A DNA stretch of 64,000 bases from the sequence record KJ019143.1. One strand, 5' to 3'. The position numbers and the translations under genes were made by a program. Of this stretch, positions 7,367 to 27,218 are shown piece by piece. Each line of letters starts with the position of its first letter. Position 1 is the stretch's first letter. The notes beneath the pieces were generated by a model. That model saw nothing but the letters and a program-made list of their open reading frames with translations, ran no database searches and was not told the DNA's origin.

Positions 7367-9327
7367 TGGCACAACCACAAATTGCTGCAAACAAAACTAA
7401 AGCTCTGAGGATTGGTCAGAGGTTGATGACTGGTGCCAAGAGTTTTGGTAAAGGTGTCAGGAATAGTGTTGATACTTCACAACAGGTCATCACTCAGAGT
7501 GCTCGTAAGATCAAATCAGATCAGAAAAGAATCAACACAGAGAATAGGAAGCAGCAAAGGTTTGAGGAAGCAGTACGGGAAGAAACAGAGAGAAGACAGA
7601 AATCCCTAACAAAGGGTGCATATGGTGTTGGTAGTGCTGCCAAGAAGCTAACCGAGAAGGTTGTGGTGGATCCAATGAAAGCTATTTGGAACATTATTGC
7701 TGCTTGGGCTATTAAGAATCTCCCAACTATTGTTGATGAAGTTAGAAAATTTGTAAAGAAAGTGAGGATTGTAATAGCTGCTATTAATAACGCGTTTAGA
7801 GCAACTGGTAACCTATTTAAGGGGTGGTTATCATATGGACAGGCTTGGCTGACAAATATGGTTACCTTTGACTGGGGTGACTCCACAGGTAGGTTGGAAG
7901 ACGCACAGGCTGAAATAGATAATAGTTATGATGAATTAGATGCAAGTTGGAATACTATCTACAATGTATGGGGTAAGGAGGAAGAAGAGTTAGACAAAAT
8001 GCTAACTTGGTTGGATAGTGGTAAGACTGTTAAACAGGCTACTGATGCTATTACACAAGGTATTCCATTGCCACAGACACCTGCTTTTGGTGATGGTAGT
8101 AGGGAAGGTGGCGGAGGTTATGGTGGATCAGGCATCCAAATGAGTGCTGATGAACAGCAACTTACAGAGTCATTGATTGCTGGTGAGGAGGGGGTAAGAA
8201 CCAAAGCATATCAGGATAGTGAAGGTATTTGGACAATTGGTTATGGTCAGACTAGAATTAATGGTAGAGCAGTAAAACCAAGTGATACAATAACAAAAGC
8301 ACAAGCATTGAGTGGTTTTAGAGGTGCTCTCGCAGAACACCAACAAAGGGCAATCAATCAACTTGGTGAGGAGAGATGGTCACAACTGGACGCAAGATCT
8401 AGAGCAGTTCTCACCTCTATAACATACAACTATGGTAGTATTCCTGGTAGAGTTCTACCTGCTGCTAAAACTGGTAATGCTGAAGACATTGCTGTAGCGA
8501 TGAATAGTTTGTATGGAGATAATAGAGGAGTTCTAAAAGGTAGAAGACAGAGAGAGCAATCTATTCTCAGAGGCGGTACTTCTTCCTACTTAGATAAAGA
8601 CTTTATGGCTGGTGGTCAATTTGCAGGCTCTGGTACTGGTCCTCTAGTCATGGGTGGTGGAAATGAATCTACTTCAGGTTCAATATCTTCATCTGGAGGC
8701 ACAACCAACACAACTGCAATGAAGAGAGGTGATATGGTTGGTGGTTTTACTGTTAGTTCTGCATTTGGACGTAGAGCTGCACCTACTGCTGGTGCTAGTT
8801 CTAATCATGGGGGTCTTGATATTGCTACTCCACAAGGAACATACTTAGCTTTTGATGTTGATGTTGAGATTATGTTCGCTGGTTCAGCTGGTGGATATGG
8901 ATATGTCATTGATGCTTGGTCGGCATCATTAGGAATTCAGTTCCGTTGTGCTCACATGTCAGTATTAATGTGTAACCCAGGACAGAAAGTTCGTGCTGGA
9001 ACTGCTGTTGGTAGAACTGGTGGTGCAGTGGGAAGTCGTGGAGCTGGTACATCCACTGGACCTCATCTTCACTTTGAAGTGAGTAATCAGAAGGGTTCTG
9101 CTAACTATGGTGGTTCAAATAGTGCTAGTATGTTAGCCAGATACGCAAAACACTTAATCCTTAGCTCATCTAAACCACAACCACAGTCACTCAGACCAGC
9201 TACAGTGAGTTCTTCCTCACAGCAAACCGCTAATCAACTTAACTCTTCTGCTTCCTCCAGAAGAACTAATGGTAGGAGAACTGATCAAAAAATAATACTA
9301 ATCAAGGAAAATACTATTATTAAATAA
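7366..9327 (+). CDS. Tape-measure-like protein with lysozyme (GH24-like) and M23 peptidase domains
   Basis: EEGVRTKAYQDSEGIWTIGYG lysozyme motif; HGGLDIA...HMS...GPHLHFEV M23 motif. Confidence 0.82.
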   Translation: MAQPQIAANKTKALRIGQRLMTGAKSFGKGVRNSVDTSQQVITQSARKIKSDQKRINTENRKQQRFEEAVREETERRQKSLTKGAYGVGSAAKKLTEKVVVDPMKAIWNIIAAWAIKNLPTIVDEVRKFVKKVRIVIAAINNAFRATGNLFKGWLSYGQAWLTNMVTFDWGDSTGRLEDAQAEIDNSYDELDASWNTIYNVWGKEEEELDKMLTWLDSGKTVKQATDAITQGIPLPQTPAFGDGSREGGGGYGGSGIQMSADEQQLTESLIAGEEGVRTKAYQDSEGIWTIGYGQTRINGRAVKPSDTITKAQALSGFRGALAEHQQRAINQLGEERWSQLDARSRAVLTSITYNYGSIPGRVLPAAKTGNAEDIAVAMNSLYGDNRGVLKGRRQREQSILRGGTSSYLDKDFMAGGQFAGSGTGPLVMGGGNESTSGSISSSGGTTNTTAMKRGDMVGGFTVSSAFGRRAAPTAGASSNHGGLDIATPQGTYLAFDVDVEIMFAGSAGGYGYVIDAWSASLGIQFRCAHMSVLMCNPGQKVRAGTAVGRTGGAVGSRGAGTSTGPHLHFEVSNQKGSANYGGSNSASMLARYAKHLILSSSKPQPQSLRPATVSSSSQQTANQLNSSASSRRTNGRRTDQKIILIKENTIIK

Positions 9328-9361
9328 CCTATAAATACCTAATATAGGTGTGTAAGGTGTA

Positions 9362-10711
9362 ATGTCTAAGAGACCAGCAATATATAGAAAAGTCTCAGTA
9401 GTTACTAAAGATGGTTTTAGGGCAGATATTCGTCTTGCTTGTGTGTCAATTGACTTCTTTCAGGATATAATGTCACCTGCACTAACGGCAAAGATTATTA
9501 TTGCCAATACTATGACTAATATTGAGGATGATCAGGGTGCCACCGTATCTCTCTATGAAGGATTGAAGTTGCGCGGTGGTGAGGCAGTTGAGATTGAAAT
9601 AGAAGCAAATAGTGAAGATAACTTACCTATTGAATTTAATAATCCTGCGTTGTATGTCAGTGGTGTATCTGAAATGAGTAGGAAGTCACTCAAACAGTTC
9701 TTCACTATCAACTTATACACCAAGGAGGCATATGATAATGAGACTAAGTTCCTAGAGAAAGCATATCCAAAAGAATCTAGAGTGAGTGATCATGTTAGTA
9801 CTATAGTTTCTGAGTCTTTTCCTACAACTACTCTCAATAAGGTAGATACTACCTCAAATACTTATGGTTTTTTGGGTAATCAACTCAAGCCATTCTATGC
9901 TCTTATCAGGTTAGCAAGTAAAGCAGTTCCTGAAGGTGCTGGTAGTGGTGGAAATAGTGCGACAGCTGGTTTCTTCTTCTACCAATCTATGAGTGGATTT
10001 AACTTTAGATCCATTGATAAAATGATGGGGGAAGAACCAAAGGCACAATATACTTACACTGAAGTTAGTTCATCTGAAGAGACTGGAGATTTTGAAGCTA
10101 CCCCAGAACTACCTTCTAATAGGTTTAAGATTGAGAAGTTTCACGTCACTAAAAACCAGAACCTCTTGAAGAACCTTAGTCAAGGTGTATATGCCTCTGC
10201 TAAGAAGTTCTTTAACCCTGTAGATTTTACAGTCACCCCACCACAAGAGTTCTTCAGTGGTGATAAGTACATCAGGGGTGTTAGTAACTTGGGTCAGGCT
10301 TTTGATCCACAAGACATCAGCTTAGTGGGTGATTCTTTGAGTTTCACTAATGTACCATCTAGGATTCTTAATGAGGTATATGATATTGGAACTGTTGAGA
10401 AAGAAGTGAATCAGGAACCTACACAAAACCCTGATGAGTTTCTAGCACAGAGAAAGATGAGGTATAATACATTATTCACTCAAGATGTTTATATTCAAGT
10501 TAGTGTTAATACTAATCTTGAGGCTGGTGATCTTGTTAAATGTCTATTCCCTAAAACTCAAGAGTGTCCTACTGATGATATAGATCAGGATCAGTTAAGT
10601 GGTCTATATATGATTAAGGAAATTAGACATCACTTTGATACTAGGGGTTCTTATTCATCTATGAGACTACTTCGTGACACCTTTGGTTTATATGGAGTGA
10701 ATAACAAATGA
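9362..10711 (+). CDS. Baseplate hub protein (gp27-like position)
   Basis: IDFFQDIMSPALTA, FFFYQSMSGFNFRSID, SGLYMIKEIRHHF; TATAAATA at 9330-9337; precedes gp5. Confidence 0.65.
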   Translation: MSKRPAIYRKVSVVTKDGFRADIRLACVSIDFFQDIMSPALTAKIIIANTMTNIEDDQGATVSLYEGLKLRGGEAVEIEIEANSEDNLPIEFNNPALYVSGVSEMSRKSLKQFFTINLYTKEAYDNETKFLEKAYPKESRVSDHVSTIVSESFPTTTLNKVDTTSNTYGFLGNQLKPFYALIRLASKAVPEGAGSGGNSATAGFFFYQSMSGFNFRSIDKMMGEEPKAQYTYTEVSSSEETGDFEATPELPSNRFKIEKFHVTKNQNLLKNLSQGVYASAKKFFNPVDFTVTPPQEFFSGDKYIRGVSNLGQAFDPQDISLVGDSLSFTNVPSRILNEVYDIGTVEKEVNQEPTQNPDEFLAQRKMRYNTLFTQDVYIQVSVNTNLEAGDLVKCLFPKTQECPTDDIDQDQLSGLYMIKEIRHHFDTRGSYSSMRLLRDTFGLYGVNNK

Positions 10712-12765
10712 CAATTAAACTTGGTAGAATCGCTGACATTGAACCACAAAAGGAACAGGTCGATGGTGGTGGATGGGCGTGGAGATACAAAGTACGCATC
10801 CTAGACAAACACTCACAGGATAAGAATGTTCTTCCTGATGAGGATCTACCGTGGGCACAGGTTATTATGCCTGTCACGGCAGGTTCTGGTGCTGCTAACT
10901 ATGCAGTATCGCCTATGATTAACCAGGGTGACACTGTAAGAATTGAGTATTATGATCTAGACGAACAACAACCAGTTATTACAGGTATCCTCCCTAGAAC
11001 TAAAAAGGTTTCTACAGGTCCAGTGGGTGAGAATAACGGATATCTACCACACACTGGTTATACAGAGAGGAGAGAGCCAAACTCCAAACAGGTAAAGGAT
11101 GAGTCACATGAATCTAATAAGGAGAGTCAAGTATCCACAAGGTCAGATAGGTTCTCCAGTGTTTTTGGTGATACAACAGTTCTAGCAGATAGTTGTGATC
11201 CTAATGCTTATAAGATTAACGCAGTAACTTCTGCTATCACTAATCTATTCAACCAGATTAATAACTTTGCTAATCAAGCGTCATACATTGAGACTATCAC
11301 ACAAGCAACTATTGATAGAATTCATGCCATTGTAAATCCATATGTGGGACAAATCTTCAATGGATTGTTTGAGGGATTGGTTCCTATTCTCAACCAGGGT
11401 TTGGCTGCATTATACAAGAAAATATTCGCTCAAGTATTGGCTGCCACTAATGGTAATGTAATTGCTGCCACTGCTGCCGCAGAAGCAGCACTCATCGCAC
11501 TTATGCCAGCTATTATGGCACTACAGGAAGCCATTCAGATGTTGGCATCTCTAACAGTTGAGCAAATGTTAGACGAGATTGATTCCCTAGTTAGGGATGC
11601 AGTTGATAATAATGATGACTTCTCCCGTTGTGCGGCAGAAGACTTCGCTTCTGCTATGATCAACGATATTGTTGATAAGACTGATAATGGTATGCAACCA
11701 CTACTAAACGCAGTCACTATTATTCTAGCACTCGCAAGTGTTGGTAGTGGATTCACCGCTGGTACTGCTATTCGTAGTACTTTGGATGTCCTAAAAGATC
11801 TCACATCTGCTCTACTTGCACCAGGTCAAAGTGGTGGTGGTAATTGTGGTGGAATCACAAAGGAATATGCATTTGGTATAGGTCCTGTGAAGGATGTGGG
11901 TGATGTTATGGATGCTCTTCTAGAGTCAGCAAACATAGCAAAGTCACTAGTAGATGAGGCAAAGAAAACACAACAGGAAGTTGATGGTCTCCTAGACACA
12001 TTTGGTGACTTCCCATTTATGAGTTCCACTACAAATATTATATCTAATCTAGACAAGTGTTCCACACTAGAACCTACTACTTGTTTTGGTCCTGAAGTTG
12101 TATTATTTGGTGGTAGAGGTGATGGTGCTGAAGCTCGTGCTATTATTGGCAACACAAAATCAAAATCAGATGATAGAATTGCTGGTAATGCGCAGGGTGG
12201 CATTGTTGCTATTGAAGTTCTGGATGGTGGTTCAGGTTATGAGTACCCACCATATGTGGATATCAGAGACAATTGTGGTCTAGGTATTGGTGGTGTTGGT
12301 AGAGCAGTCCTAAAGGGTGATAAGGTAGATAAAATCTATATGGTGAATATTGGTGAAGACTATCCTGGAGATGCACCTGGGGACTTTATTGTTGATACTA
12401 TTATCATCGTTGATGGTGGCATAGGATATGAACCAGGTATTACTCCTGGAGGTGAATATGAAGTTATTACTGACCCAGGTGGAACAGTTATTGGTATTAT
12501 TCCCACACAACCAGTACCACTCCCTGGTATCCCAAATATAAATATTCCAGATGTATCTCCACCTATTCCACCAGGAGGTAATATCATTGATGGTAATGTT
12601 GTAGATGAGAATGGTAAAGTAATAGCACCCGCTAAGATTGGTACTGGTTTAGTATTCTATCCAGTTATCAAACAGATACCCCCACTTAAGGACCTCCTTG
12701 AGGGTAATGTTCCTGGATTTACACCGGAAGAAGTTGTATTCATTATTGATTGTATTCAGAGTTAG
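10708..12765 (+). CDS. gp5: Baseplate hub/spike protein, gp5 N-terminal OB-fold part
   Basis: GWAWRYKVRILDKH, DEDLPWAQVIMPVTAGSG, QQPVITG; no lysozyme motif seen. Confidence 0.75.
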   Translation: MTIKLGRIADIEPQKEQVDGGGWAWRYKVRILDKHSQDKNVLPDEDLPWAQVIMPVTAGSGAANYAVSPMINQGDTVRIEYYDLDEQQPVITGILPRTKKVSTGPVGENNGYLPHTGYTERREPNSKQVKDESHESNKESQVSTRSDRFSSVFGDTTVLADSCDPNAYKINAVTSAITNLFNQINNFANQASYIETITQATIDRIHAIVNPYVGQIFNGLFEGLVPILNQGLAALYKKIFAQVLAATNGNVIAATAAAEAALIALMPAIMALQEAIQMLASLTVEQMLDEIDSLVRDAVDNNDDFSRCAAEDFASAMINDIVDKTDNGMQPLLNAVTIILALASVGSGFTAGTAIRSTLDVLKDLTSALLAPGQSGGGNCGGITKEYAFGIGPVKDVGDVMDALLESANIAKSLVDEAKKTQQEVDGLLDTFGDFPFMSSTTNIISNLDKCSTLEPTTCFGPEVVLFGGRGDGAEARAIIGNTKSKSDDRIAGNAQGGIVAIEVLDGGSGYEYPPYVDIRDNCGLGIGGVGRAVLKGDKVDKIYMVNIGEDYPGDAPGDFIVDTIIIVDGGIGYEPGITPGGEYEVITDPGGTVIGIIPTQPVPLPGIPNINIPDVSPPIPPGGNIIDGNVVDENGKVIAPAKIGTGLVFYPVIKQIPPLKDLLEGNVPGFTPEEVVFIIDCIQS

Positions 12766-12767: not shown

Positions 12768-13469
12768 ATGGCAGAACAAAATTGGGAAAGAAGAATACTC
12801 CAGAGTTTTGGTGCTAACTTTCGACTAGATGTTAGTAACCCACAGAAGACTGTTGGTGGTGAAGATGTATATAACTTCTACTCTGTTACAGATGAGGAGA
12901 AAGTATGTCTAATGGGACAACAACAGGATGGTCTCTGGCGCCTCTACAATGATGATAAGGTAGAGATTGTAGGTGGTGCCAAAGTTGTTGAGGATGGTGT
13001 ATGTGTAACTATTGTTGGTAAGAACGGTGATGTAGTTATTAACGCTGACAACAACGGGAGGGTTAGAATCCGTGGGCAGAATATCAACCTCCAGGCAGAT
13101 GAGGATGTTAATATCACTGCGGGTAGGAATGTTAATATCAAATCTGGTTCTGGTAGAACTCTCCTTGCGGGCAATACCCTGGAGAAAGACGCACTCAAAG
13201 GTAATCTATTAGACCCAGAGAAACAATGGGCATGGAGAGTATTTGAAGGAACTGGACTACCTGCTGGTATGTTCCCACAACTCATGTCACCCTTCAGTGG
13301 TATTACAGACCTAGCGGGATCTATTGTTGGTGGAGTTGGGTTCGGTGATGCAATCAGTGGGGCTGTGAGTAGTGCAGTCAGTGGGGCAGTCAGTGGTGCT
13401 GTTGGTGGTGTCGCCGGTGGTGTCGCCGGTGATATTGCTGGTGACGCAATTGGTGGTATTATACCCTGA
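12768..13469 (+). CDS. Spike beta-helix protein (gp5 C-terminal-like)
   Basis: Beta-strand repeats GDVVINADNNGRVRIRGQNINLQADEDVNITAGRNVNIKSG; ATG 12768 preferred to TTG 12750. Confidence 0.6.
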   Translation: MAEQNWERRILQSFGANFRLDVSNPQKTVGGEDVYNFYSVTDEEKVCLMGQQQDGLWRLYNDDKVEIVGGAKVVEDGVCVTIVGKNGDVVINADNNGRVRIRGQNINLQADEDVNITAGRNVNIKSGSGRTLLAGNTLEKDALKGNLLDPEKQWAWRVFEGTGLPAGMFPQLMSPFSGITDLAGSIVGGVGFGDAISGAVSSAVSGAVSGAVGGVAGGVAGDIAGDAIGGIIP

Positions 13470-13507
13470 TAAATATAAGAAGCACCTATAACTAGCACCT
13501 ATTAGTA

Positions 13508-16297
13508 ATGGCAAGCATTCAATTCCCAGCAAATCCGAAAGTTGGTGATACTTACTACGACGTAGATACAAATATAACTTACACCTGGGAGGGTGAATAC
13601 TGGTTTGCAACAGGACCAGGCACAGGTATTGGTGCCACTGGAGCAACTGGAGCACAAGGAAATCAAGGTTCTAGTGGTGAAAAGGGTGAGCCAGGAACTC
13701 GCGGAATTAAAGGAGATACTGGATCTACTGGTTCTACCGGTCCCACAGGTCCTGGTGGTTTTATTGGATTAACAGGTGCAACTGGTCCTCAAGGTTCTCC
13801 CGGTGGTGCTACCGGTGCTACAGGTAATATTGGTCCTTTAGGAACTACTGGTGCAACTGGTCCTGATGGTGCTAGTGGTGCTACAGGTATTCAGGGTCCT
13901 ATTGGTACTCCAGGTGGTGCAACTGGCGCTACTGGTTTAGCTGGTCCTCCAGGAAATGTTGGTGCTACTGGTCCTCTCGGTCCTAATGGTACTCCAGGTG
14001 GTGCTACTGGTCCTCTTGGTCCTGTTGGTTCTACTGGAGCCACTGGTGCTGGTGCTACTGGCTCTGATGGTGCTACTGGTTCTACAGGTATTCAGGGACT
14101 ACAAGGTTCCCCAGGTGGTGCAACTGGTGCTACTGGTATTGATGGTTTACTAGGTCCTATTGGTGCCACAGGTACTACAGGAGCTACCGGTGTTGATGGT
14201 CCTATTGGTGCCACAGGTACTACAGGTGCCACAGGTGAGACAGGTGATACAGGTTCAACCGGTGCTGCTGGTCCTACCGGTATTCCTGGAGCCACTGGAT
14301 TTACTGGTCCCGAAGGTGCTACGGGTTCCAAAGGTGATGAAGGTTCTACAGGTAGTACAGGTCCTCAAGGTTCTCCAGGTGGTGCCACTGGTGCTACTGG
14401 TGTTGATGGTCCTGTAGGTTCTACAGGTGCCACAGCTGCTACTGGTGCAACTGGTCCTGACGGTCCTACTGGTCCCGCAGGTCCTACAGGTTTATTAGGT
14501 GCCACTGGTGCTACTGGTGATGATGGTTCTACCGGAGCCACTGGTGCTACTGGTTTTGGTGCTACAGGTGCTGATGGTGCTACTGGTTCTACAGGTTCTA
14601 CAGGTCCTGATGGTCCTCTTGGTTCTACTGGTGCCACTGGTATTGCAGGTGGTGTGAGTCATGTATGGTCACCAGATGTTTCTATCCTAACTGCCAACAA
14701 CTCTTTCCTATTCACCCACGATGTAGACGAAGATATTAAGATCCTAAAGATCTCCAAGTTTAGTTCAACATTCACCAATGAGGAGGCACTACTTAATAGT
14801 TTTGCAATCGGTGATTCACTTAGACTAACATCAGGTCCAGCAACATTCCAATATACTGTTAGAGCCAATGGTGGACTCACAGTATCATCTGGTGTTGACG
14901 TGTTTATGTTACTCGTCAGTGATGGTTTCTTAGCATCTGGTAGTGGAACACTCAATGGTTCAACAGTTGTTCTTCAACGTCCCACATCATCCACCTTCGC
15001 TACATTTAACTTCGGTGTATCCACTATCAACTGGCCTACTACTGATGGTGATGTAACTATTGACTATCCATTCCTAGTAAACAATGGTCCTAGGTATGTT
15101 GCATTCAATCAGAAGGATCTACTAGGTAGGGATGATGAGCAGTTCTTCTTTGAACCTTTAGTATCTACAGACCTAAACTCATTCCAGTTCCAGGTTAAGA
15201 CTACTAACTTCTTCAAATCAGAAATTGAAGGTGGTTACTACTATAGTGATATTGATGCCTATGTGTATCTAACTGATATCACCGAACTATATTCAGATCC
15301 AAGTAATCCAGTAACCAGTGTGGGTTCACCTTGGAATGTTCAGGTTGTAGGTATTGCCTCCGCCATTCCTGGTGTTGCTGGTTCTCCAGGTGGTGCAACC
15401 GGTGCTACTGGTCCTGCTGGTCCTCCAAGTGGTGCAACTGGTGCTACAGGTGATCTTGGTCCTATTGGTCCCGGTGGTCCTACTGGTCCCGTTGGTGTTA
15501 ACGGATCCCCAGGTTCACCCGGTGGTGCAACTGGTGCCACTGGTGCTGATGGTCCTGAAGGTGCTACTGGTTCTACAGGTGCAACAGGTGCATTCGTTAC
15601 TGGTAGTAATCTTGTAGCAGGTATTATCACAGCCACCACATTTGATGGTGATGCCACATCAGCTAATAAGATTAAGACTAACCAATCCACCAGTGCGGCT
15701 GTTAACTATCTAACTTTCGTTTCTGATGATAACACTGGTGGTGCCGTTAGTGAAACCCTCAAGACAAACTTGAATGTAAGTTTCATTCCTTCTTCTGGTG
15801 ATTTTATCGCTAGTAGGATTACAGCAAGTAACAACTTCTACCTGGGTGGTACTGAGGTCAATTCTTCAGCATCTGAACTAAATGTGTTGGTTGGTGTTAC
15901 TGACTTCTTAGATGAAGATAATATGGCATCCGATAGTCCTACGGCTATCCCATCACAACAATCAGTTAAGAGGTATGTTGACGCTAACGCTTTCTCTGGT
16001 ATTACTACAGTTAGTATCCTAGTGGGCGCTGGTTCTAGTGATGTATACTTCGCAAGTTCTATTGTTCCAACTACTAATGAGTCTATTGATTTAGGTAGTA
16101 TTGACTATAAGTTCAGAGACCTCTACCTATCAGACACAACCATATATACTAACACTGGTGAACTTAGTGTAGGTTTGAATACCACAGCACCAACCGCAAA
16201 GGTTGTTCTTGGTCCAGCACTACAAACAATTGTTCAACAGTCCACTGATTTTGATGACTTTAAGATCAGAATCGCAGCACAAAGTTGGGGTGGTTAA
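13508..16297 (+). CDS. Collagen-like virion fibre protein
   Basis: Two G-X-Y tracts (about 13615-14650 and 15365-15595) rich in GAT/GST/GPT; N-terminal FPANP..GD..YTW anchor; ATAAATA at 13469-13475. Confidence 0.9.
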
Positions 16298-16300
16298 TTA

Positions 16301-16723
16301 ATGGGTTATCGTAATGAGAAAGCTCCCCACACTGGGAGCTTATTGGTAGGAACTGGAGGTAAAGTTACATTTACCGGTAGATCCTCTGGTGATATGAATA
16401 AGATTGCCACTTGGGGTGAAGAGGGGGGACAGATAGAATCCACCAACTTTTCTGATCTTCTGGCACTCTATGAGGAAGAATTTGCAGTGTCTATTGTCAG
16501 TGAAGATGAACCTTCGCTAAGACCTTTGGGTGAAGACCTAAAACTAGGAGATTTGTGGTATAGTACGTCAGAACGGAGACAGTATGTTTTTACAAATGGA
16601 ATTGATGACCTTCCAGTCACCTTTAGAGGCTGGACACCTGTTATTTCAGGACTTAGTACGATTGCTAACGGATTTGTTGTATCCAATGGTATCATTGTTG
16701 GTGTGGCAGCAACAACTCCATAA
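16301..16723 (+). CDS. Hypothetical protein, probably fibre-associated
   Basis: GDLWYSTSERRQYVF..W motif; directly follows collagen gene. Confidence 0.6.
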   Translation: MGYRNEKAPHTGSLLVGTGGKVTFTGRSSGDMNKIATWGEEGGQIESTNFSDLLALYEEEFAVSIVSEDEPSLRPLGEDLKLGDLWYSTSERRQYVFTNGIDDLPVTFRGWTPVISGLSTIANGFVVSNGIIVGVAATTP

Positions 16724-16758
16724 TATGGTATAATGGTGGGTAAGTATCTTATACCCAC

Positions 16759-17322
16759 ATGAGCCACGAGCACGAAGATTACGAATTTGAAAAAGATTAT
16801 TGGGGTGATTGTTGTAATACCTTCGATGAGGATCAGAAACACTATGTGTATGCCCGTCTAATGGGATTAGAACAGGCACACTATAGTTTTCGTTTGCCTG
16901 GTATTTCTGTAATTGATATTGGTGGCGGTCCTTCTTCGATGTTATTGAAGACTGAAGGACTTACTAGAGGTTTGGTTGTAGATCCTATTTCATATCCTCA
17001 ATGGACTAAAGATAGGTATTCAGTAAAGAATATTGAAGTCCATGTAGATGTTGGTGAGAATGTAACAGAGACAGGATATGATGAGGTGTGGATATACAAT
17101 TGTATGCAACACGCTATTGATCCAGAGAAGATTATTGCTAACGCAAGGGAAGCAGCACCAGTCCTAAGATTGTTTGAGTGGATTGATATTCCAGCACACG
17201 ATGGTCACCCCCACGAACTAACAGAGCAATCACTAAATAAGTGGATTGGTCAAACCGGTAGTGTTACATCTCTAGCAGAGAGTGGTTGCTATGGTAAAGC
17301 ATATTATGGAGTATTTGAGTGA
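16759..17322 (+). CDS. Class I SAM-dependent methyltransferase-like protein
   Basis: VIDIGGGPSS, LVVDP, YDEVWIYNCMQH..DPEKII. Confidence 0.72.
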   Translation: MSHEHEDYEFEKDYWGDCCNTFDEDQKHYVYARLMGLEQAHYSFRLPGISVIDIGGGPSSMLLKTEGLTRGLVVDPISYPQWTKDRYSVKNIEVHVDVGENVTETGYDEVWIYNCMQHAIDPEKIIANAREAAPVLRLFEWIDIPAHDGHPHELTEQSLNKWIGQTGSVTSLAESGCYGKAYYGVFE

Positions 17323-18410
17323 GTAATAAGTTTCGATTTCATATTCTCGGACTCCCCCATACTGTTACGCATCCAGACTTCTCCGCATGTGCGTACACAT
17401 CTAAAGTCTTAAAGTTCGGTAAGATGATGAAGGCACGTGGGCATGAAATCATTCACTATGGACACGAAGATAGTGAGTTGGTTTGTGATGAACATGTTAC
17501 AGTAACTACCAACAAAGACTTAGAGATTGCTTATGGTGATTATGACTGGAGAAAGAACTTCTTCAAGTTCAATACATCGGACCACGCATATCAAACCTTC
17601 TACAAGAATGCTATTGAAGAAGTAGGTAAGCGCAAACAGAAGAATGATTTCATCCTACCTTTCTGGGGTAGTGGTACTCGTCCAGTTTGTGATGCTCACC
17701 CAGAAATGATTTGTGTGGAACCTGGTATTGGTTATGCTGGTGGTCACTGGTCTCAGTGGAAAGTGTTTGAGAGTTATGCCATTCTCCACGCTTATCAGAA
17801 CCTAACATCAGTAGGAACCTGTAAACAGAGTTGGTATGAGGTTGTAATCCCTAACTATTTTGACTTAGATGATTTCACCTACGCCCCAGAAACTAAAGAA
17901 GACTATTTTCTATTCTTGGGGCGCGTATATAGTGGTAAGGGCATTGATATTGCTGTACAGGTTACTGAACACATAGGTGCTAAACTAAAAGTAGCAGGAC
18001 AGAACCCAGAGAATAGAACTTTCCCACCACATGTGGAGTTTGTTGGATATGCTGATATTGAGATGAGACGGGAGTTGATGTCTAAAGCAAAGGCATCCTT
18101 TGTTGCATCACAATACCTAGAACCTTTCGGTGGTGTTCAGGTGGAGAACTTATTATCAGGAACTCCTACTATCACTACAGACTGGGGTGCTTTCGTTGAG
18201 AACAACCCAGACGGACTAACTGGTTTCCGTTGTCGTACATTCGGTGACTTTGTTGATGCCGCTAATAACATTGACCAGATATCTCCTGCAGTATGTCGCA
18301 CTTTCGGTGAGCAGTTTGCACTGGAGAATATTGCTCCCAAGTACGAGAAGTATTTCCAGGATGTTCTCAATGTATATACTGGAAAGGGATGGTATGAACT
18401 AAATGAATGA
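17319..18410 (+). CDS. Glycosyltransferase (GT-B, family 4-like)
   Basis: FLFLGRVYSGKGIDIA, YLEPFGGVQVENLLSGTPTITTDWGAFVE. Confidence 0.9.
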   Translation: MSNKFRFHILGLPHTVTHPDFSACAYTSKVLKFGKMMKARGHEIIHYGHEDSELVCDEHVTVTTNKDLEIAYGDYDWRKNFFKFNTSDHAYQTFYKNAIEEVGKRKQKNDFILPFWGSGTRPVCDAHPEMICVEPGIGYAGGHWSQWKVFESYAILHAYQNLTSVGTCKQSWYEVVIPNYFDLDDFTYAPETKEDYFLFLGRVYSGKGIDIAVQVTEHIGAKLKVAGQNPENRTFPPHVEFVGYADIEMRRELMSKAKASFVASQYLEPFGGVQVENLLSGTPTITTDWGAFVENNPDGLTGFRCRTFGDFVDAANNIDQISPAVCRTFGEQFALENIAPKYEKYFQDVLNVYTGKGWYELNE

Positions 18411-18996
18411 ACTAATACAAACGATTGATTGTATTACTCAAACTGAAATCAATACAATCAAAGAATATGTCCAAGATGATTGGTGGCAACCTACTACTAT
18501 CTTTGGAATGTCTGGTTGTGAAATTAATACAGATGTTAGATCCAATGATAGAATATCTCTCCATGATGATAGTATTGCCGCTCAGATTATTCATACGGGT
18601 ATGAATAAGGCACTCCTTGAGTATAGAACACAACTCTATAATGTTGATCCATACTTCAACAATTACCCAGTTCCAGGATCATATAGGACTAATTGTCATA
18701 GGGAAGGTATTCAACTCCTTAGATATAAAGAAGGACAACACTACAACTGGCATCACGATACTGCAGCAGAACGTGCAGTAAATGAGTATCACAGAACGAT
18801 CTCTATTGTGTTATACTTATCAGATGACTTTGAGGGTGGTAGAACAGTCTTCCCCCACAGAGCATACAAACCAAAAGCAGGTCAGGCACTAATTTTTCCC
18901 TCTAACTGGTGTTTCCCACATAAGTGTGAACCAATCACAAAGGGTGTGAAGTTAGCATCTGTTTCCTGGTACTATTCACATTATAACTATGACTGA
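18403..18996 (+). CDS. 2OG-Fe(II) oxygenase (prolyl-hydroxylase-like)
   Basis: WHHD, ISIVLYLSDDFEGG, FPSNWCFPHKCEPI, K-x-A-S. Confidence 0.92.
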   Translation: MNELIQTIDCITQTEINTIKEYVQDDWWQPTTIFGMSGCEINTDVRSNDRISLHDDSIAAQIIHTGMNKALLEYRTQLYNVDPYFNNYPVPGSYRTNCHREGIQLLRYKEGQHYNWHHDTAAERAVNEYHRTISIVLYLSDDFEGGRTVFPHRAYKPKAGQALIFPSNWCFPHKCEPITKGVKLASVSWYYSHYNYD

Positions 18997-19165
18997 AAAT
19001 AAGACTACACCACAAACAGTAGAAGAAGCAACTCATGCTGCTTTCACTGGAAAGATGAACATGATCAAGTGTGCAGAACACTGTGGGATGACGATAAAAC
19101 AGTTTAAATTAACCTTCCGTGAGTATCTAAAATACCACCCAATAGACGAAAATTATCCTATCTAA
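18989..19165 (+). CDS. Small hypothetical protein (58 aa, not in ORF track)
   Basis: MTENKTTPQTVEEATHAAFTGKMNMIKCAEHCGMT...; fills gap, overlaps upstream stop. Confidence 0.6.
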   Translation: MTENKTTPQTVEEATHAAFTGKMNMIKCAEHCGMTIKQFKLTFREYLKYHPIDENYPI

Positions 19166-22100: not shown

Positions 22101-25067
22101 GAGAGAGATGGTATCTACCACTTATTCCTTCTTAATGGTTCTAACCCAGTAACAGAGACATTCACTGATATCCAATACAATCAACCTGTGGAAGATTTAT
22201 ATCCACAGATGGATCCTGATAACCTTATTCAGAACCCCCCTGCAACCACAACGTTTGCTAAGAGGGCACCCCTAGGTGATGTTACTATTGATGAACAACA
22301 GAACTCCATTACTAAAGAGTCTGTTGATAAAATATACAAGACACTTAATGTTGGTATCATTGAGACTGCTACTGATGGCACTGTTGGTGCTGGTGGAACA
22401 CGTACAACCACACTAACATTCCAAAGAGAGCACGAGTTCAACTCTGTGTATAGTTACACCACACTAGTTGGTGGTGGTGGATATACTGATGGTACTTTCT
22501 ATGATGTTAAACTACTCAGTGAGTTTGGCACAGTATGGGGAGGTGCTTCTGCTGTTGTTACTGTTACTGCTGGTACAGTTACCGCAGTTACTATCATGGA
22601 TCCTGGTTCAGGTTATTCTGCAGGTCAGACACTATTCATCGATGGAACTACAATTGGTGGTGGTACTAACGCTACTATTAGTATTACTCAGGCAGACTTA
22701 GAGGATAACAAGCATAGTATCCTACAGATTTCTGGTGGTGCTTTGTATAACCCAGATTCATATGTAGTGATGACCAGTGTTGAGGATCAGTCTTCAGTTG
22801 GTGTTGCTAGAACTTCTGGAAGTCCTGCTATTATTCCTGGTATGTACGCATATCCAGCAGATAGTGGAACAGGTATTTCTTCAACTACATATAACTCCGA
22901 TACAGGTTTAACAACACTAGTATCTACAGGTAGTGCTGGTTTTGGTCTTCAGAGGGGTAACACTTTCGTTGTATTCAGTAGTAACTATAGCTATCTCGGT
23001 AAGTTCTTTGTATCTAATGTTCCAACTCCAGATACATTGGAGTTCTACTCATACCGAGATCTAGGAACTGTATCTATTGTAGGTAAGACAGGTTTAGATG
23101 TAAATGATGCTAACACTGGTTCCTTAGGTGAGAACGTGGGTGTTAGAGCTACACCACTATATGATAACGGTGTATTCTATCTTGAACAGTCTTCAGGTAC
23201 TGGAACACAACTAACAGTTAGGGCTGAAGATGGTGGTGTGGCTGGTAATGTAGACTCTAAGATGTACCTAGGAAGATACTTCCAAATGGGTTCTGAGATT
23301 ATCAGAGTTGCTAGTAAGAACTTTGATGGAGCCAATAACAATATCGTAACTGTTATCCGTGGTGCTCTTGGTACCGTTGTTAGCAACCTTCCCATTAATA
23401 CTAAGGTGAAGGCAATCAGACCTTCCGCACTAGAACTTAGAAGACCTTCTATTCTACGTGCCTCAGGTCACACCTTTGAATATCTTGGTTATGGTCCTGG
23501 TAACTATTCCACTTCATTACCACAACTACAGGTTAAGCAACTCCCAGATGATGAAATTTACCTAGTACAGGCTCAGGAACTATCCTGTGGTCAGGTTGTT
23601 TATACTGGTATGAGTGATAATGGTGACTTCTATATCGGTAATACCAAGTATTCCGCAACCTCAGGAACACAATCAACCTTTGATGTTCCCATCCCAACTG
23701 TTGCTGGTCAACCAGGTAGTTCTAATAATGTTGTGTTTGATGAAGTTATCATCAACCGTCGTCTATTCGTATCTGGTGGTGAAACTAATGAGGTTCAGTC
23801 ACAGTTTGATGGTCCTGTTAAGTTTACCCAGTCTGTTACTATTCAGAACAATCTTTTCGTAACTGGTACAACTCAACTCAATAGAATTGAGATCACCAGT
23901 ACAGAGAACGCAACCAGTTCTGCTAATGGTGGAGCACTAACTATCAGAGGTGGTGCTGCTATTGGTAAAGACTTCTATGTTGGTGGTGAAATGTACACCA
24001 ACGCATATCAAATAGAAGATACAAGTGCAGTTCTTGAAATTGGTACTAACCAGTCATCTAAGGATATCTCTGTTGGTGGTTCAACTGATACAGATAGAGT
24101 TGTTTTTAATACAACTAAACTAGCAACAGGTGAAGGTGCTGAAGAGGTAGTTAACGCAGACGCTGGTGTTGTTGTTGAGGGTGGATTAGTTGTTCGTGAT
24201 GTTATTATCGCGAAAGAGTTTAGAGGTGCTGGAACTGGTGGTGGTCCTGGTACTATCCTACTCTGGGGTGGTTCTACTAGTGCTCTCCCTGACAGATATC
24301 TACTCTGCAACGGAGCTACTCTCAATAAAAACACATATAACAAACTATTCGAAGCCATTGGTTATATCCATGGTGGTAGTGGTAATAGTTTTAAGTTACC
24401 AGATTTGAGAAATAGGTTTATCCCTGGTGCTGGTAGTTCTTATGCGGTAGCTGCAAAAGGTGGGGATGATTCAGTTGTACTAACTGAAACGCAGATGCCA
24501 CGCCACACGCACTCAACTTCAGCAGTCAACGCACCACATACTCACCCAGTATCGTTTACTAGTGGAGCGGCAAATGCACCACATAAACACCCAGCTGGCA
24601 CAGGTGGCGGTGGAAATCATAACCACCCATCAGGTGGCACAGGTGGTGGTGGTAATCACAATCACCCATCAGGTGGCTCTAACAATACAGGCAACCATGG
24701 ACACCCGTATAGTGCTCCGGGGCAATCCAAAACTGATGTTGCTAATTCTAACGAGAAGAATGTAACTAGCAACGTCAATGCCTCAGGTGCAGGAACCGGT
24801 GGTGGTGGAGCACACTCCCACTCTGTTTCAGTTAACAGTACATCCTCAGCTCATAATCACCCAGTAAGTGTCAACTCTGGATCTTCAGCTCATAATCACC
24901 CTGTTAGTGTTAATTCAGCTAATGCACCACATTCCCACCCAATTAGTGGTAATGCAGGTTCTGCAAACGCACCTCACGTTCACCCAATTGGTAATACTGG
25001 TGGTACTGCTTCCTTTGACAATAGACCCAAATACTACGCTCTCTGCTATATTATCCAATCAGAGTGA
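19200..25067 (+). CDS. Large tail-fibre/virion structural protein with C-terminal collar domain
   Basis: MPLNKLENF..LYVNPND..PFRTIQRALIE; collar GTILLWGG..YLLCNG..LFEAIG..FKLPDLRNRF; HxH-rich tip; TTG start; TAAATA at 19163-19168. Confidence 0.85.
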   Translation: MPLNKLENFIKNTDGRTLYVNPNDLNATDSITNQGTSLTEPFRTIQRALIESARFSYVRGDDNDLIERTTIMVYPGEHPIDNRPGFGIKTVGNSPVAVTPSGELIDPFQAFNLTDASNFDIESSNNVLYRFNSIYGGVVVPRGTSIVGMDLRKTKIRPIYVPNPTDDSVDYSAIFRITGTCYFWQFTIFDGNENGVVFTDPRDFSENNQSRPTFSHHKLTAFEYADGVNPAVESGFELTDLAMYYSKLSNAYNEASGRPIDEKYPSDPGGFSPQRPEFEIVGAFATDPINITRLISGDGFVPDAVITVDTQVPHELNTGTPIKIRGVAISDYNISTKVSAVLSPTRFTYNLSFVRPNLPAEPSVSSATVTVETDTVTGASPYIFNCSMRSVWGINGMHADGAKATGFRSMVVAQFTAISLQKDDRSFVTYNKQARRYDGINVNKTVRGAELSAQSSSTNSATVYHLDPDAIYRPDWGTTHIKMSNDAVIQIVSVFAIGFNQHFASIGGADASITNSNSNFGQFALKADGFKNDAFLKDDKGFLTSFVSPKSAYNPETDDIEIIDWINIDFDLTRSIAFANQLYLTGYTNAEDKPPVVNQGFRIGANYKESLIQRTTVGAGADVTSSVRMCDNILGPGNNQANGSSVARKVYQVLAGPINNTLSLGVHGLLNGESVRVFSSTGDLPENLERGALYYANVVDGENIRIATSESNALNNIFLNIYGGVELRVESRVNDKEAGERGHPVQYDYTNQNWFVHTDANSDIYQYIVANPTSTDGIDFVSIFKRFGDNRALEDKLYRLRYVIPKESRNAKPPTPGYVLQASATTGARNNDDFILQDIGINDYEYNRNPRYVVSCTVIANEVEVRSEIPHNLNVGDKIKIVNVASTNNTGASQIKGFNGEFLVTRVINSREFRYDITDVNGFSRNPGTFTNNINERNILLPRFERKDLQSNVFVYRIETITDFLEGERDGIYHLFLLNGSNPVTETFTDIQYNQPVEDLYPQMDPDNLIQNPPATTTFAKRAPLGDVTIDEQQNSITKESVDKIYKTLNVGIIETATDGTVGAGGTRTTTLTFQREHEFNSVYSYTTLVGGGGYTDGTFYDVKLLSEFGTVWGGASAVVTVTAGTVTAVTIMDPGSGYSAGQTLFIDGTTIGGGTNATISITQADLEDNKHSILQISGGALYNPDSYVVMTSVEDQSSVGVARTSGSPAIIPGMYAYPADSGTGISSTTYNSDTGLTTLVSTGSAGFGLQRGNTFVVFSSNYSYLGKFFVSNVPTPDTLEFYSYRDLGTVSIVGKTGLDVNDANTGSLGENVGVRATPLYDNGVFYLEQSSGTGTQLTVRAEDGGVAGNVDSKMYLGRYFQMGSEIIRVASKNFDGANNNIVTVIRGALGTVVSNLPINTKVKAIRPSALELRRPSILRASGHTFEYLGYGPGNYSTSLPQLQVKQLPDDEIYLVQAQELSCGQVVYTGMSDNGDFYIGNTKYSATSGTQSTFDVPIPTVAGQPGSSNNVVFDEVIINRRLFVSGGETNEVQSQFDGPVKFTQSVTIQNNLFVTGTTQLNRIEITSTENATSSANGGALTIRGGAAIGKDFYVGGEMYTNAYQIEDTSAVLEIGTNQSSKDISVGGSTDTDRVVFNTTKLATGEGAEEVVNADAGVVVEGGLVVRDVIIAKEFRGAGTGGGPGTILLWGGSTSALPDRYLLCNGATLNKNTYNKLFEAIGYIHGGSGNSFKLPDLRNRFIPGAGSSYAVAAKGGDDSVVLTETQMPRHTHSTSAVNAPHTHPVSFTSGAANAPHKHPAGTGGGGNHNHPSGGTGGGGNHNHPSGGSNNTGNHGHPYSAPGQSKTDVANSNEKNVTSNVNASGAGTGGGGAHSHSVSVNSTSSAHNHPVSVNSGSSAHNHPVSVNSANAPHSHPISGNAGSANAPHVHPIGNTGGTASFDNRPKYYALCYIIQSE

Positions 25068-25109
25068 TGGTATAAATATCTATAAGGTACTCTAACCATT
25101 TTATAGATA

Positions 25110-27218
25110 ATGGCGAATTTTAATAAGGCGTTTAACTTTAGAGGTGGCTTCCAAGTTGATGAAGACACCTTTTTGGTGCGCGGTTCTAACGTTGGTATCG
25201 GATCTTCTGTTCCATCAGAAAGACTAGATGTTGACGGTGTTATTAAAGCTCGCGGTTTAATTATTGACTCCACTGATGTTGTTGCCATTACTACCGCATA
25301 TGTTGGTGTTGTAAGTGCAACTGAGGTTCAATCCGGTATATTCACTGGAACTCCAAAAAATGGTGGTATTGCTACTTACTATGGTGATGGATCACAACTA
25401 ATCAATCTCCCCACATCTCAGTGGGTTGATATTGATGTAGGATTAGGCTTCACTAGTATCTACGCAGCTGGAAATGTTGGTGTTGATACTGTAGATCCTA
25501 GGTATAAGTTTCAGGTCGGTGGAGTTCCTTTCAAAACCAAAACTGGTCCCCTCTTACAAGCACAAGATGGTGTAGGTGTTGAGGATGGTAACATTTATTT
25601 CTCTGGTATTGCCTCTGCCAGATTCAAACCCGGTCTAGAAAAGCAGGGTTTTGTGGGTTATGGTTCATATATTAATACATTAAATGCAGCTGAACTCACC
25701 ACTGGTGATATTCCTTCATATGCATATGGTGATCTTATTATCACCGAAGAAATTATAGCACCTAAACTAACAGGTATTGCATCAACTGCTATCGGTGTTA
25801 CAACTGATGCTCAGTTATCATTTGATACTGCAGTAGCAAACGAACTTAGAGCAAAGAATAGATTTATCAGTACAGAAGGTTATCTTCAGATTGGTACTGA
25901 TGAAGATGTTGCTGGTGTAGGTGATATTGAAGTAGTAAAAGATACAGATAACTCCAACATCTATTCAATATCTAATACTCGAGCACAAATTCTGGTGGGT
26001 AATGAGAGACCCGGTGGATCTAATCGTGGTATTGGTGGAATAAGGAAGGGCACATTTACTAGTGATCCACTCACATCAGCCACTGATGTAGATTTGGTTA
26101 ACTATGATGTCGGTAACCTAAACTTCTATCTCCATAACGGATCTGGTGGTCAGGGTGCAACAACTGGTAAGTTCCGTTGGATATATGGCCAGAGAGATAT
26201 TTCAGTTATGGAGCTGGATAAAGATGGTCAATTAGTTCTACCTGATAATGTAGTGGTTACAGGTCCACTCCTAAGTGTTGGTGGAAGTGCATATCTCAAG
26301 AATGGTGCTCAGTTAGATGGTGATCTAAATGTTACATCAGGTATTGGTTCTTTCGCTAATGATGTTAATATCTTTGGAGAACTCAGTGTAGGTAGTATCT
26401 CAATATCTGGTGTTGTTACATTTAGTGGTATTGACACAGATATCCTAACTGTAGGATCAGACACAGTTATTCAATCTGGCATTGCAACCATTGCAAGAAT
26501 TATGGTTGTTAATGATACAACCAATTCAGTAGATATCGATGGTTCTCTTGAGTCATCAACATTAGTAACAACTAACGCTAGTTCTTCCACATTAGTATTC
26601 TCACAGAGTTTAACAGGACCGAATGGTTTCACAGTATCATCTGATGGTAGTGTAACAGCCTCTAGTGTGGATGTATCAGGTAATATAGGTGCTGGTGGGA
26701 CTTTTGAAGGTGTTGATATTGTTACAAACACCGGAAGCATCAACGACCTCACTGTTAGTGAATTAATCGGATCTAAAGTCGATGTTAGTGAGGTCGAAAC
26801 TGATAGTCTCAATGTAGCAAACTCATCCACAGTTAATGACCTAAGTGCTACTAGTATTGAGACCACATCCATTCAGGCAGACACCACTGATTTCAATGCC
26901 ATGGAAGCAACTGCCGCAAGTGTGGATAGTTTAGGTTCTAAGAGTGGATCAAAAGTAGATATATCTGATGATCTAGACTTACAGAACAACGATATCGATG
27001 GAGTTAATGAGATAAACGTTGAGAACCTCAACGCAAACGATAGGGTTTCTAGCTCCTTTGGGCGCTATGGTATTACTAACAACAACTACGTTTCTATTGA
27101 TTATGGGGACAGAGGTTTCGGTAGTCAAGATCTTCCAGCTATTACTTTCGAGGTGTTTGATGATAACAACGTTTCCCTAGGACAGACATACTTCAAACTA
27201 TATACCCCTGTCCCCTGA
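25110..27218 (+). CDS. Virion structural/fibre protein
   Basis: MANFNKAFNFRGGFQVD..NVGIGS, beta-repeat character; TATAAATA at 25071-25078. Confidence 0.75.
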   Translation: MANFNKAFNFRGGFQVDEDTFLVRGSNVGIGSSVPSERLDVDGVIKARGLIIDSTDVVAITTAYVGVVSATEVQSGIFTGTPKNGGIATYYGDGSQLINLPTSQWVDIDVGLGFTSIYAAGNVGVDTVDPRYKFQVGGVPFKTKTGPLLQAQDGVGVEDGNIYFSGIASARFKPGLEKQGFVGYGSYINTLNAAELTTGDIPSYAYGDLIITEEIIAPKLTGIASTAIGVTTDAQLSFDTAVANELRAKNRFISTEGYLQIGTDEDVAGVGDIEVVKDTDNSNIYSISNTRAQILVGNERPGGSNRGIGGIRKGTFTSDPLTSATDVDLVNYDVGNLNFYLHNGSGGQGATTGKFRWIYGQRDISVMELDKDGQLVLPDNVVVTGPLLSVGGSAYLKNGAQLDGDLNVTSGIGSFANDVNIFGELSVGSISISGVVTFSGIDTDILTVGSDTVIQSGIATIARIMVVNDTTNSVDIDGSLESSTLVTTNASSSTLVFSQSLTGPNGFTVSSDGSVTASSVDVSGNIGAGGTFEGVDIVTNTGSINDLTVSELIGSKVDVSEVETDSLNVANSSTVNDLSATSIETTSIQADTTDFNAMEATAASVDSLGSKSGSKVDISDDLDLQNNDIDGVNEINVENLNANDRVSSSFGRYGITNNNYVSIDYGDRGFGSQDLPAITFEVFDDNNVSLGQTYFKLYTPVP

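Follow-up and report, generated by a model that had tools for sequence, protein, structure and literature searches.

A glycosyltransferase (GT) gene located downstream of a threonine-rich collagen-like fibre gene in Synechococcus phage ACG-2014f belongs to a family whose link with threonine-rich collagen genes is well supported by sequence comparisons across phages and bacteria. Both genes lie in segment 13508-18996 of the window, as we call the whole 64-kb stretch analysed here, which comprises bases 1-64000 of KJ019143.1 from isolate Syn7803C12 of this T4-like cyanomyovirus (Kyanoviridae, Atlauavirus). The segment also holds a small open reading frame (ORF) and genes for a methyltransferase (MT) and a 2-oxoglutarate (2OG)-Fe(II) oxygenase. 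The best joint explanation of the data, to which we give an intermediate degree of confidence, is that the GT, probably together with methylation, O-glycosylates the G-X-Thr repeats of the fibre, with a weaker claim attached for the oxygenase. Somewhat more tentatively, the GT family may represent a widespread and previously unrecognised enzyme dedicated to O-glycosylating threonine-rich collagen-like surface fibres of phages and bacteria.

The segment is 100% identical to KJ019143.1, and the gene bounds agree with the GenBank annotation, in which a collagen protein, a 'group 1 glycosyl transferase' and 'PiuC' are labelled and the remaining ORFs are hypothetical. An earlier note on this DNA had read the segment as a candidate system by which the phage hydroxylates and glycosylates its own fibre. 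The collagen gene, its small partner and the overlapping enzyme genes are all found at the positions given in that note, and its labels of methyltransferase, GT4-type glycosyltransferase and 2OG-Fe(II) oxygenase hold, the first of them by fold alone. All three enzymes keep their catalytic motifs. Literature searches returned nothing on this cluster or on fibre modification in ACG-2014f.

Glycosyltransferase and threonine-rich collagen

The 929-aa fibre protein matches the collagen family PF01391 with an E-value of 3.4e-41 and 139 bits (cutoff 27.2), as well as tail-fibre families of PHROG, and its gene is located between hub and fibre genes. It contains 132 G-X-Y triplets in 12 runs, which form two blocks (aa 42-383 and 629-696). 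An N-terminal domain precedes the first block, a globular middle region of 245 aa (aa 384-628) separates the two, and a C-terminal domain of 233 aa follows the second; PDB searches with the middle and C-terminal domains gave no relatives. Threonine occupies the Y position in 59 of the 132 triplets (45%), with GAT, GST and GPT occurring 33, 13 and 5 times, respectively, and proline was counted 30 times at X and 11 times at Y. The 410 collagen residues include 74 threonines, 41 prolines and 3 lysines. The motif G-[ST]-P-G-G-A-T-G occurs seven times, always at a one-residue break of the triplet register, and the collagen blocks hold 12 Pro-Gly pairs that could form part of an X-Pro-Gly substrate.

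The GT matches PF00534 with 47.6 bits (cutoff 26.4), and PF13692 is also matched. Its AlphaFold model has a predicted local distance difference test (pLDDT) score of 86.4 and displays the full GT-B fold of two Rossmann domains. The best Foldseek match, with a template modelling (TM) score of 0.74, is Tll1591, the glucosylsucrose synthase of Thermosynechococcus, followed by cyanobacterial pterin glucosyltransferases, AviGT4, BshA and a methylmannose-polysaccharide mannosyltransferase; PimA, MshA and the 'family GT4' enzyme 2jjm are matched as well. The E-x7-E pair of the C-terminal domain (E268/E276) is invariant in 3 distant and 33 close homologues, and the sequence is conserved from residue 6, in support of a GTG start at 17319.

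Among isolated phages, the GT was found in ACG-2014f (45 records), S-CAM7 (85% identity) and S-CBWM1 (31% identity, not Kyanoviridae). In all three it lies downstream of a threonine-rich collagen gene, in ACG-2014f with a gap of 1 kb and in what appears to be the same operon, so that the adjacency spans the genera Atlauavirus, Mazuvirus and Aokuangvirus, the last of them outside the Kyanoviridae. Phage GTs linked to threonine-rich collagen include some that are just 31-34% identical. At least 470 relatives of the GT are present in IMG/VR, and the family as a whole comprises at least 5,495 proteins. We assembled a GT-centred viral set of 82 loci, consisting of 80 IMG/VR loci, S-CAM7 and S-CBWM1, in which an ORF with at least 20 triplets was counted as collagen. 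Such an ORF was present in 49 of the 82 loci, and in 29 of the 36 loci with flanks of at least 6 kb on both sides. After dereplication, the nearest collagen ORF was on the strand of the GT in all viral cases (37/37) and at most 300 bp away in 19 of the 37. The neighbourhoods display at least 7 different gene orders, for example baseplate-GT-collagen-collagen, collagen-GT-GT-like, GT-fibre-small ORF-collagen, and collagen-collagen-GT2-TylF methyltransferase-homing endonuclease-GT.

Several other neighbours of the GT were observed in this survey. A heme oxygenase gene lies directly upstream in four loci (L015, L032, L033 and L044; e.g. L015 441-986), and a gene for a papain-family (C1) peptidase lies upstream of a GT-MT pair at L021 8085-8921. 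One lineage with no collagen gene within 10 kb (L040, L042, L046, L049 and L055, at about 8275-12100) carries in a row the genes for a methyltransferase, a 2OG oxygenase (PF13640), the GT and a GT1-like protein, and the methyltransferase and oxygenase are not orthologous to those of ACG-2014f.

Bacterial genome contigs contributed 46 GT loci, with GT identities of 30-75% and a GC content of 0.34-0.70. A threonine-rich collagen ORF was present in 13 of them and lay at most 300 bp from the GT in 8 of these 13. On a Lachnospiraceae contig (L277 6598-9122) and a Bacillota contig (L289 4177-6445), both from metagenome-assembled genomes, the collagen-GT pair stands isolated among housekeeping genes, its neighbours being enolase, CorA, cation efflux, ABC transporter, two-component and EAL/GGDEF genes; the GTs of these two contigs are 42-43% identical to that of ACG-2014f. 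A PHROG scan of the neighbours at two further bacterial GT-collagen loci found no phage families except collagen itself, and these two pairs are therefore probably not located in prophages.

The composition of the collagen repeats differs with the enzymes encoded beside them. Syntenic fibre modules with the oxygenase orthologue but no GT served for comparison, and all values given here are medians over dereplicated loci. Loci with the GT and no oxygenase orthologue (n = 35) had threonine at Y in a fraction of 0.60 (interquartile range (IQR) 0.51-0.64) and proline at Y in 0.02. Loci with the oxygenase orthologue and no GT (n = 47) had corresponding values of 0.15 (IQR 0.05-0.26) and 0.12, and the ACG-2014f- and S-CAM7-like loci with both enzymes (n = 6) had 0.46 and 0.08. 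In Mann-Whitney tests, which ignore phylogenetic relatedness, GT-only and oxygenase-only loci differed with p = 3e-14 for threonine at Y and p = 9e-6 for proline at Y. The threonine-richness beside the GT persists across bacterial contigs of diverse GC content, which argues against a compositional artefact. Co-occurrence with collagen genes, which the earlier note had named as a check of its proposal, is thus well supported by the comparative data where the GT and threonine-rich collagen are concerned.

Methyltransferase and oxygenase

The MT had no match in Pfam or NCBIfam and matched no named PHROG family. Sequence hits in the PDB to designer beta-propeller 'Cake' proteins were dismissed as spurious sums of weak repeat matches. 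A confident AlphaFold model (pLDDT 91.7), built from 44 homologues, gave at least 500 Foldseek matches, of which the listed top 50 are dominated by methyltransferases dependent on S-adenosylmethionine (SAM), with a probability of 1.00 and TM scores of 0.5-0.64. They include sugar and natural-product O-methyltransferases, protein N-terminal methyltransferases, and Trm112-type and tRNA methyltransferases. The glycine-rich D-x-G-x-G-x-G stretch resembles motif I, and its residues D53, G55 and G57 are invariant across the 44 sequences. By its predicted fold only, the MT is thus identified as a class I SAM-dependent methyltransferase of an uncurated family, which has 692 homologues and no Pfam label.

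The MT is tied to the GT and not to collagen. In MT-centred viral loci a GT homologue was present in 68 of 80 cases, and within 1.5 kb in 66 of 80; the order and the strand of the pair vary, and GT identity goes down to 32%. Methyltransferases of other types also accompany the GT. TylF-type or Methyltransf_23 genes adjoin it in other loci, and 53 of its 120 closest homologues (P0134-P0240 among them) carry a C-terminal extension. According to precomputed Pfam labels, most of these 53 extensions are methyltransferase domains (PF13489/PF08241/PF13649 or the FkbM-type PF05050), one is an HtrL (HtrL_YibB) domain and five have no Pfam label; the GT domain was N-terminal in all 13 extended proteins checked by BLAST. 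Since MT-GT adjacency is joined by independent GT-methyltransferase fusions, the link between the GT and methylation is robust.

Two sets of loci show the MT or its counterparts in particular surroundings. At L061, L063 and L065, two collagen genes are followed by a GT2+HtrL gene and the GT, with genes for a TylF-type sugar O-methyltransferase and a NUMOD3 homing endonuclease inserted between the latter two (e.g. L063 8704-9324, L065 3180-3857). MT homologues without a GT were seen in tRNA arrays at L164, L166/L180, L172-L175, L177 and L222/L223, with the MT at about 8001-8570 or 10001-10560, and in L164 genes for Thg1 and RlaP are located nearby.

The oxygenase matches PF13640 with 66.7 bits (cutoff 27). 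Its best solved relatives are prolyl 4-hydroxylases (P4H): in the PDB, the top matches to a profile of 28 orthologues were the P4Hs of B. anthracis (1.3e-15), Chlamydomonas (8e-10) and PBCV-1 (3e-9) and the alpha-2 subunit of human collagen P4H (7e-6), with a PKHD-type hydroxylase (8e-4) and prolyl 3-hydroxylase 1 (1e-3) as weaker matches. The iron triad (H117, D119 and H173) and the 2OG-binding K183 are invariant in the 28 orthologues. S-CAM7, P-SSM2 and some 139 stretches of IMG/VR hold orthologues with 40-58% identity. The P-SSM2 gene stands between five collagen ORFs on its upstream side and, downstream, a small ORF and a gene for a 1908-aa fibre, and P-SSM2 has no GT or MT homologue; the five consecutive collagen-like ORFs (L084 3277-11118) have 11-89 triplets each and are rich in proline at both X and Y. 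In 44 of 59 loci, the oxygenase is followed at a distance of no more than 3 kb by the start of a homologue of the giant tail fibre of ACG-2014f (1955 aa), and 27 of 35 orthologue loci have a collagen ORF of 25 or more triplets on the upstream side. The fraction of proline at Y beside the oxygenase reaches 0.56 (median 0.12), which is higher than in the GT-only loci. These distributions suggest that the oxygenase is an old member of the fibre module, inherited separately from the other two enzymes and tied to the giant fibre gene.

Two further 2OG oxygenases were noted. A second P4H-like gene of the window, at 28199-28771, has conserved catalytic residues and stands within a block of small genes. 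The virion-associated 2OG oxygenase of S-SCSM2R was set aside as an orthologue lead, being encoded in a cell-wall gene cluster and not in a fibre module.

The MT-GT-oxygenase trio in the form seen in ACG-2014f was found only in ACG-2014f, and in most lineages the oxygenase orthologue is accompanied by neither GT nor MT. The view that the three enzymes constitute one fibre-modification system is not supported in that form, because the trio is so restricted, the MT-GT pairs are mostly collagen-free, the MT also occurs in tRNA arrays and the oxygenase is inherited separately; each enzyme has a different distribution, and the trio is not a conserved unit. The earlier note had held that a cluster found independently of collagen genes would speak against its proposal. 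In part this is what we observed, as MT-GT pairs mostly have no collagen gene within 6-10 kb.

Gene order and expression context

The genes around the collagen gene, together with the putative regulatory signals, are listed in Table 1. The MT and GT genes overlap by 4 bp, the GT and oxygenase genes by 8 bp, and the oxygenase gene and the 58-aa ORF by 8 bp.

Table 1. Coordinates of genes and putative signals in the late structural block of the window.
Feature	Position	Strand	Basis or remark
gp5-like baseplate hub	10708-12765	+	phrog_1922, E = 7e-226
233-aa protein	12768-13469	+	weak hub and NfeD-like matches
Late-promoter-like motif	13468-13475	+	overlaps upstream stop codon; collagen start codon 32 bp on
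Collagen-like fibre protein, 929 aa	13508-16297	+	PF01391, PHROG tail-fibre families
140-aa ORF	16301-16723	+	homologue of N-terminal part of second collagen fibre
Class I SAM methyltransferase by fold (MT), 187 aa	16759-17322	+	AlphaFold/Foldseek
GT-B, GT4-type glycosyltransferase (GT), 363 aa	17319-18410	+	PF00534
P4H-type 2OG-Fe(II) oxygenase, 197 aa	18403-18996	+	PF13640
58-aa ORF	18989-19165	+	phrog_1920
Tail fibre with Collar domain, 1955 aa	19200-25067	+	phrog_529, PF07484
Another fibre-like protein	25110-27218	+	
Strong intrinsic-terminator-like hairpin	27249-27270	+	end of structural block

The small partner of the collagen gene, as the earlier note had called it, is a real ORF. The 140-aa product is 41% identical to the start of S-CAM7 gp015, a second collagen fibre of 636 aa, and it matches phrog_36982 and phrog_34255, both of which are also matched by the collagen protein. 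Apparently it represents the head of another fibre gene, one without a collagen stalk in ACG-2014f. Homologues of the 58-aa ORF occur in S-CAM7-like loci, where they are syntenic with the oxygenase and giant fibre genes. Directly 5' of the collagen gene, the 233-aa protein ends in a low-complexity Gly/Ala/Val/Ser tail (13300-13469), and the C-terminal ~270 aa of the giant fibre, past its Collar domain, consist of His-rich short repeats of an H-x-H-P-like type (24249-25067).

For late promoters we scanned with what we take to be the 8-base T4-type consensus and with its 7-base core. The core has 10 matches in the window, 9 of them on the + strand, with 8 of these 9 in the first 25 kb, and it lies at most 40 bp upstream of a gene start at 2095, 2873, 4503, 9331, 13469 and 25072. 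The counts of both the 8-mer and the 7-mer in the window are not above chance, so that their suggestive value lies only in strand and placement. After the motif upstream of the collagen gene, the next core is the one at 25072, before the next fibre gene. No hairpin inside the block is as strong as the terminator at 27249, and weaker terminator-like matches are present inside it. A scan for sigma-70 promoters gave a count not above that in shuffled sequences and was uninformative within the block. One sigma-70-like promoter (11/12 positions, 27256-27284) overlaps the terminator hairpin, and together they mark a sharp border (27249-27284) at which the late structural block gives way to an extended series of small ORFs. 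The gene overlaps, the placement of the motif and the position of the terminator point to late transcription of MT, GT and oxygenase with the fibre genes in one operon. The location of the cluster in the late structural block, as the earlier note had it, is likewise borne out by the motif just upstream of the collagen gene and by a strong terminator found only at the end of the block.

Candidate substrates and known systems

In the reading that we prefer, the GT would act before virions are assembled, in the cytoplasm of the host cell during infection, and would use a nucleotide sugar as donor to attach a sugar to the fibre. The likeliest acceptor would be the hydroxyl group of threonine at the Y position of the collagen repeats, and a methyltransferase would then methylate that fibre glycan. 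The resulting virion would carry a sugar-coated collagen stalk, as do BclA, BclA3 and glycosylated giant-virus fibrils, and the sugars may contribute to triple-helix stability, receptor contact or shielding. BclA glycans carry methylated sugars. With low confidence, we also propose that the oxygenase hydroxylates proline at X-Pro-Gly sites, seven of which lie within the recurring register-break motif. Of the modification of the phage's own fibre proposed in the earlier note, glycosylation is therefore plausible in view of the comparative link, whereas prolyl hydroxylation of the ACG-2014f fibre is possible but weakly supported, because the distribution of the oxygenase follows the giant fibre, often without GT or MT and beside collagens with little proline.

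A number of observations weigh against this reading. Sugars or small molecules are the substrates of the enzymes whose solved structures come closest to the GT (glucosylsucrose synthase, pterin glucosyltransferase and BshA), and the protein O-GlcNAc transferase GtfA ranks only 40th among its structure matches. A collagen gene is present in only 27 of 64 dereplicated GT loci with a flank of at least 6 kb, and none lies within 10 kb of the GT in three architectures, one of which carries methyltransferase, 2OG oxygenase (PF13640), GT and GT-like genes in a row. The MT is not tied to collagen: among these dereplicated loci, those with an MT of the ACG-2014f type have collagen in 6 of 21 cases, MT-centred loci have a collagen ORF of at least 25 triplets in just 12 of 80, and among GT loci the presence of this MT does not predict that of collagen (Fisher p = 0.18). 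GT-less MT homologues with 67-72% identity lie inside arrays of 8-35 tRNA genes on large phage contigs, and this particular MT may therefore act on RNA or a general metabolite. As for the oxygenase, 8 of 35 loci have no sizeable collagen upstream, and 12 of 47 dereplicated loci keep it beside collagens with at most 2% proline at Y, 9 of these 12 being without lysine at Y as well; since the enzyme persists beside proline-free collagens, prolyl hydroxylation of collagen cannot be its universal role. Its paralogue in the window, 24% identical, lies in the early region past the terminator. Finally, the association statistics are not phylogenetically independent.

The main alternative, to which we assign a low probability, is that the GT, with the MT and, in relatives, other GTs, modifies a glycan of the host envelope, namely the O-chain of lipopolysaccharide (LPS) or another surface polysaccharide. 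Its purpose could be, for example, a block of superinfection, and its location in the fibre region would be owed to the hypervariability of that region. This is the published default for GTs that T4-like cyano- and pelagimyophages encode in their hypervariable fibre region (PMC7029224; PMC12801897), and it fits the partner genes of relatives, which include a GT2+HtrL_YibB protein and an LPS-type GT1-like protein, the nearest solved structures, whose activities extend sugars or small molecules, and the absence of a nearby collagen gene from more than half of the GT loci. However, the cluster showed neither a flippase nor a polyprenol-linked or membrane component, and the genes sit and overlap inside a late fibre operon. 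No cluster protein had a Pfam match to the Gtr-type seroconversion families (membrane GT plus flippase), although no dedicated transmembrane prediction was run, and the two small ORFs of the cluster have no long hydrophobic run. The location of the GT at most 300 bp from threonine-rich collagen in many unrelated arrangements, including isolated bacterial pairs, and the correlation of threonine at Y with the presence of the GT also speak for the fibre as substrate and against a host glycan.

Equally improbable, in our estimate, is mere hitch-hiking of three enzymes with unrelated substrates in a hub-fibre region that serves as a landing pad for accessory genes. In that case the substrate of the MT would be RNA (tRNA) or a metabolite, that of the GT a free sugar or a small molecule, and that of the oxygenase a protein (the giant fibre or a different one) or a small molecule. 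Each enzyme indeed has its own distribution. The MT stands alone in tRNA arrays and near Thg1, and its fold neighbours include Trm112-dependent and tRNA methyltransferases; the GT elsewhere adjoins genes for dCMP deaminase, DnaB, terminase, gp32 or heme oxygenase; and the oxygenase, of a P4H-like type that is multi-copy in ACG-2014f, is linked more constantly to the giant fibre gene than to collagen. Against this, the MT-GT pairing is kept through rearrangements and down to a GT identity of 32%, fusions of GT and methyltransferase genes are frequent, collagen genes cluster within 300 bp of the GT far more than an even scatter over 10 kb would give, and a set of methyltransferase, 2OG oxygenase and GT recurs with non-orthologous genes in another lineage. 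A third possibility, glycosylation of the phage DNA by the GT to give a hypermodified base that counters restriction, we regard as very improbable. Phage GT-B enzymes of similar fold do act in this way, a Rhizobium phage GT shares the best PDB match 7FG9 (PMC13326640), and in some lineages the GT adjoins dCMP deaminase. The lead through 7FG9 was nevertheless rejected: this structure is the cyanobacterial glucosylsucrose synthase, used as a generic template in PMC13326640, and the match is a generic GT4 resemblance that is not specific to DNA glycosylation. Moreover, the neighbours seen beside the GT in the window include no nucleotide hydroxymethylase or hydroxylase, its gene belongs to a late fibre operon, and the GT adjoins collagen in bacterial chromosomes without any logic of DNA modification.

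Collagen-like fibres are known to be common in the host-recognition modules of cyanophages, and GTs in these modules are routinely taken as modifiers of host LPS. The comparative signal reported here is new, in that one GT family pairs with threonine-rich collagen across phages and bacteria regardless of GC content, and it makes the family a concrete candidate for the enzymes behind the glycosylation of collagen-like proteins in bacteria. Should the fibre prove to be the substrate, T4-like cyanophages would be added to the viruses that glycosylate their own particles, alongside mycobacteriophages, chloroviruses and mimiviruses, with an enzyme family that is not homologous to those systems and a target, threonine in G-X-Thr, that is chemically defined and easily sought. 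If the GT family is indeed dedicated to such fibres, abundant marine and freshwater cyanophages would carry collagen fibres coated with methyl sugars, which would affect adsorption, host range or particle stability. Caution is warranted, as the MT and the prolyl-hydroxylase-like gene each have their own, differing associations, and two of the three enzymes misfit a simple story.

The nearest parallels for fibre glycosylation are the spore collagens. SgtA of C. difficile, encoded next to bclA3, places O-GlcNAc on threonine of GPT repeats (PMC7157674), and the ACG-2014f locus resembles BclA3/SgtA and BclA of B. anthracis in combining a G-X-Thr-rich collagen-like protein with a nearby GT gene. 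In contrast to SgtA, a GT-A enzyme with tetratricopeptide repeats (TPR) as described in PMC7157674, the phage GT is of the GT-B type and, in a comparison made by description, has no GT-A or TPR hit. The putative phage substrate would be a tail fibre and not a spore nap as for BclA and BclA3. For the oxygenase, the comparison is with B. anthracis P4H, Chlamydomonas P4H-1 and PBCV-1 P4H, with which it shares the His-x-Asp...His residues and the 2OG-binding lysine. The alignment with these known P4Hs is confined to the C-terminal core (residues ~98-190), the first ~97 residues are unique, and orthologues of the phage enzyme persist beside proline-free collagens.

Among viruses, mimivirus L230 is a lysyl hydroxylase and glucosyltransferase that acts on viral collagen-like proteins (PMC9614988). 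Both viruses thus combine collagen-like proteins with a 2OG oxygenase and a GT. L230, however, is a single PLOD-like/GLT25-like fusion that acts on lysine, whereas the ACG-2014f oxygenase is P4H-like, is encoded separately from the GT and has a separate evolutionary distribution; in line with this difference, lysine is scarce in the ACG-2014f collagen, and no lysyl hydroxylase is among the PDB hits of the oxygenase. In PBCV-1, the GT-GT-MT protein A064R builds a methylated capsid glycan with A061L (PMC9614988), and a GT and a SAM methyltransferase are coupled as in our case, here by adjacency or, in homologues, by fusion. The domains of A064R are GT-A-type and novel GTs acting on an N-linked capsid glycan, and they have no sequence relation to the phage GT. 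Virion glycosylation in mycobacteriophages (Freeman et al, 2023, as cited in PMC12801897 and PMC12619734) provides a further parallel, since the phages' own GTs, encoded near structural genes, glycosylate virion proteins there, as is proposed here; according to these citing papers, the targets are C-termini of capsid and tail-tube subunits and not collagen, and the host and GT families differ. The proposed system is therefore best classed as a collagen-like surface fibre glycosylated by an enzyme encoded beside it, and new here would be a non-homologous GT family and its occurrence in a tailed phage.

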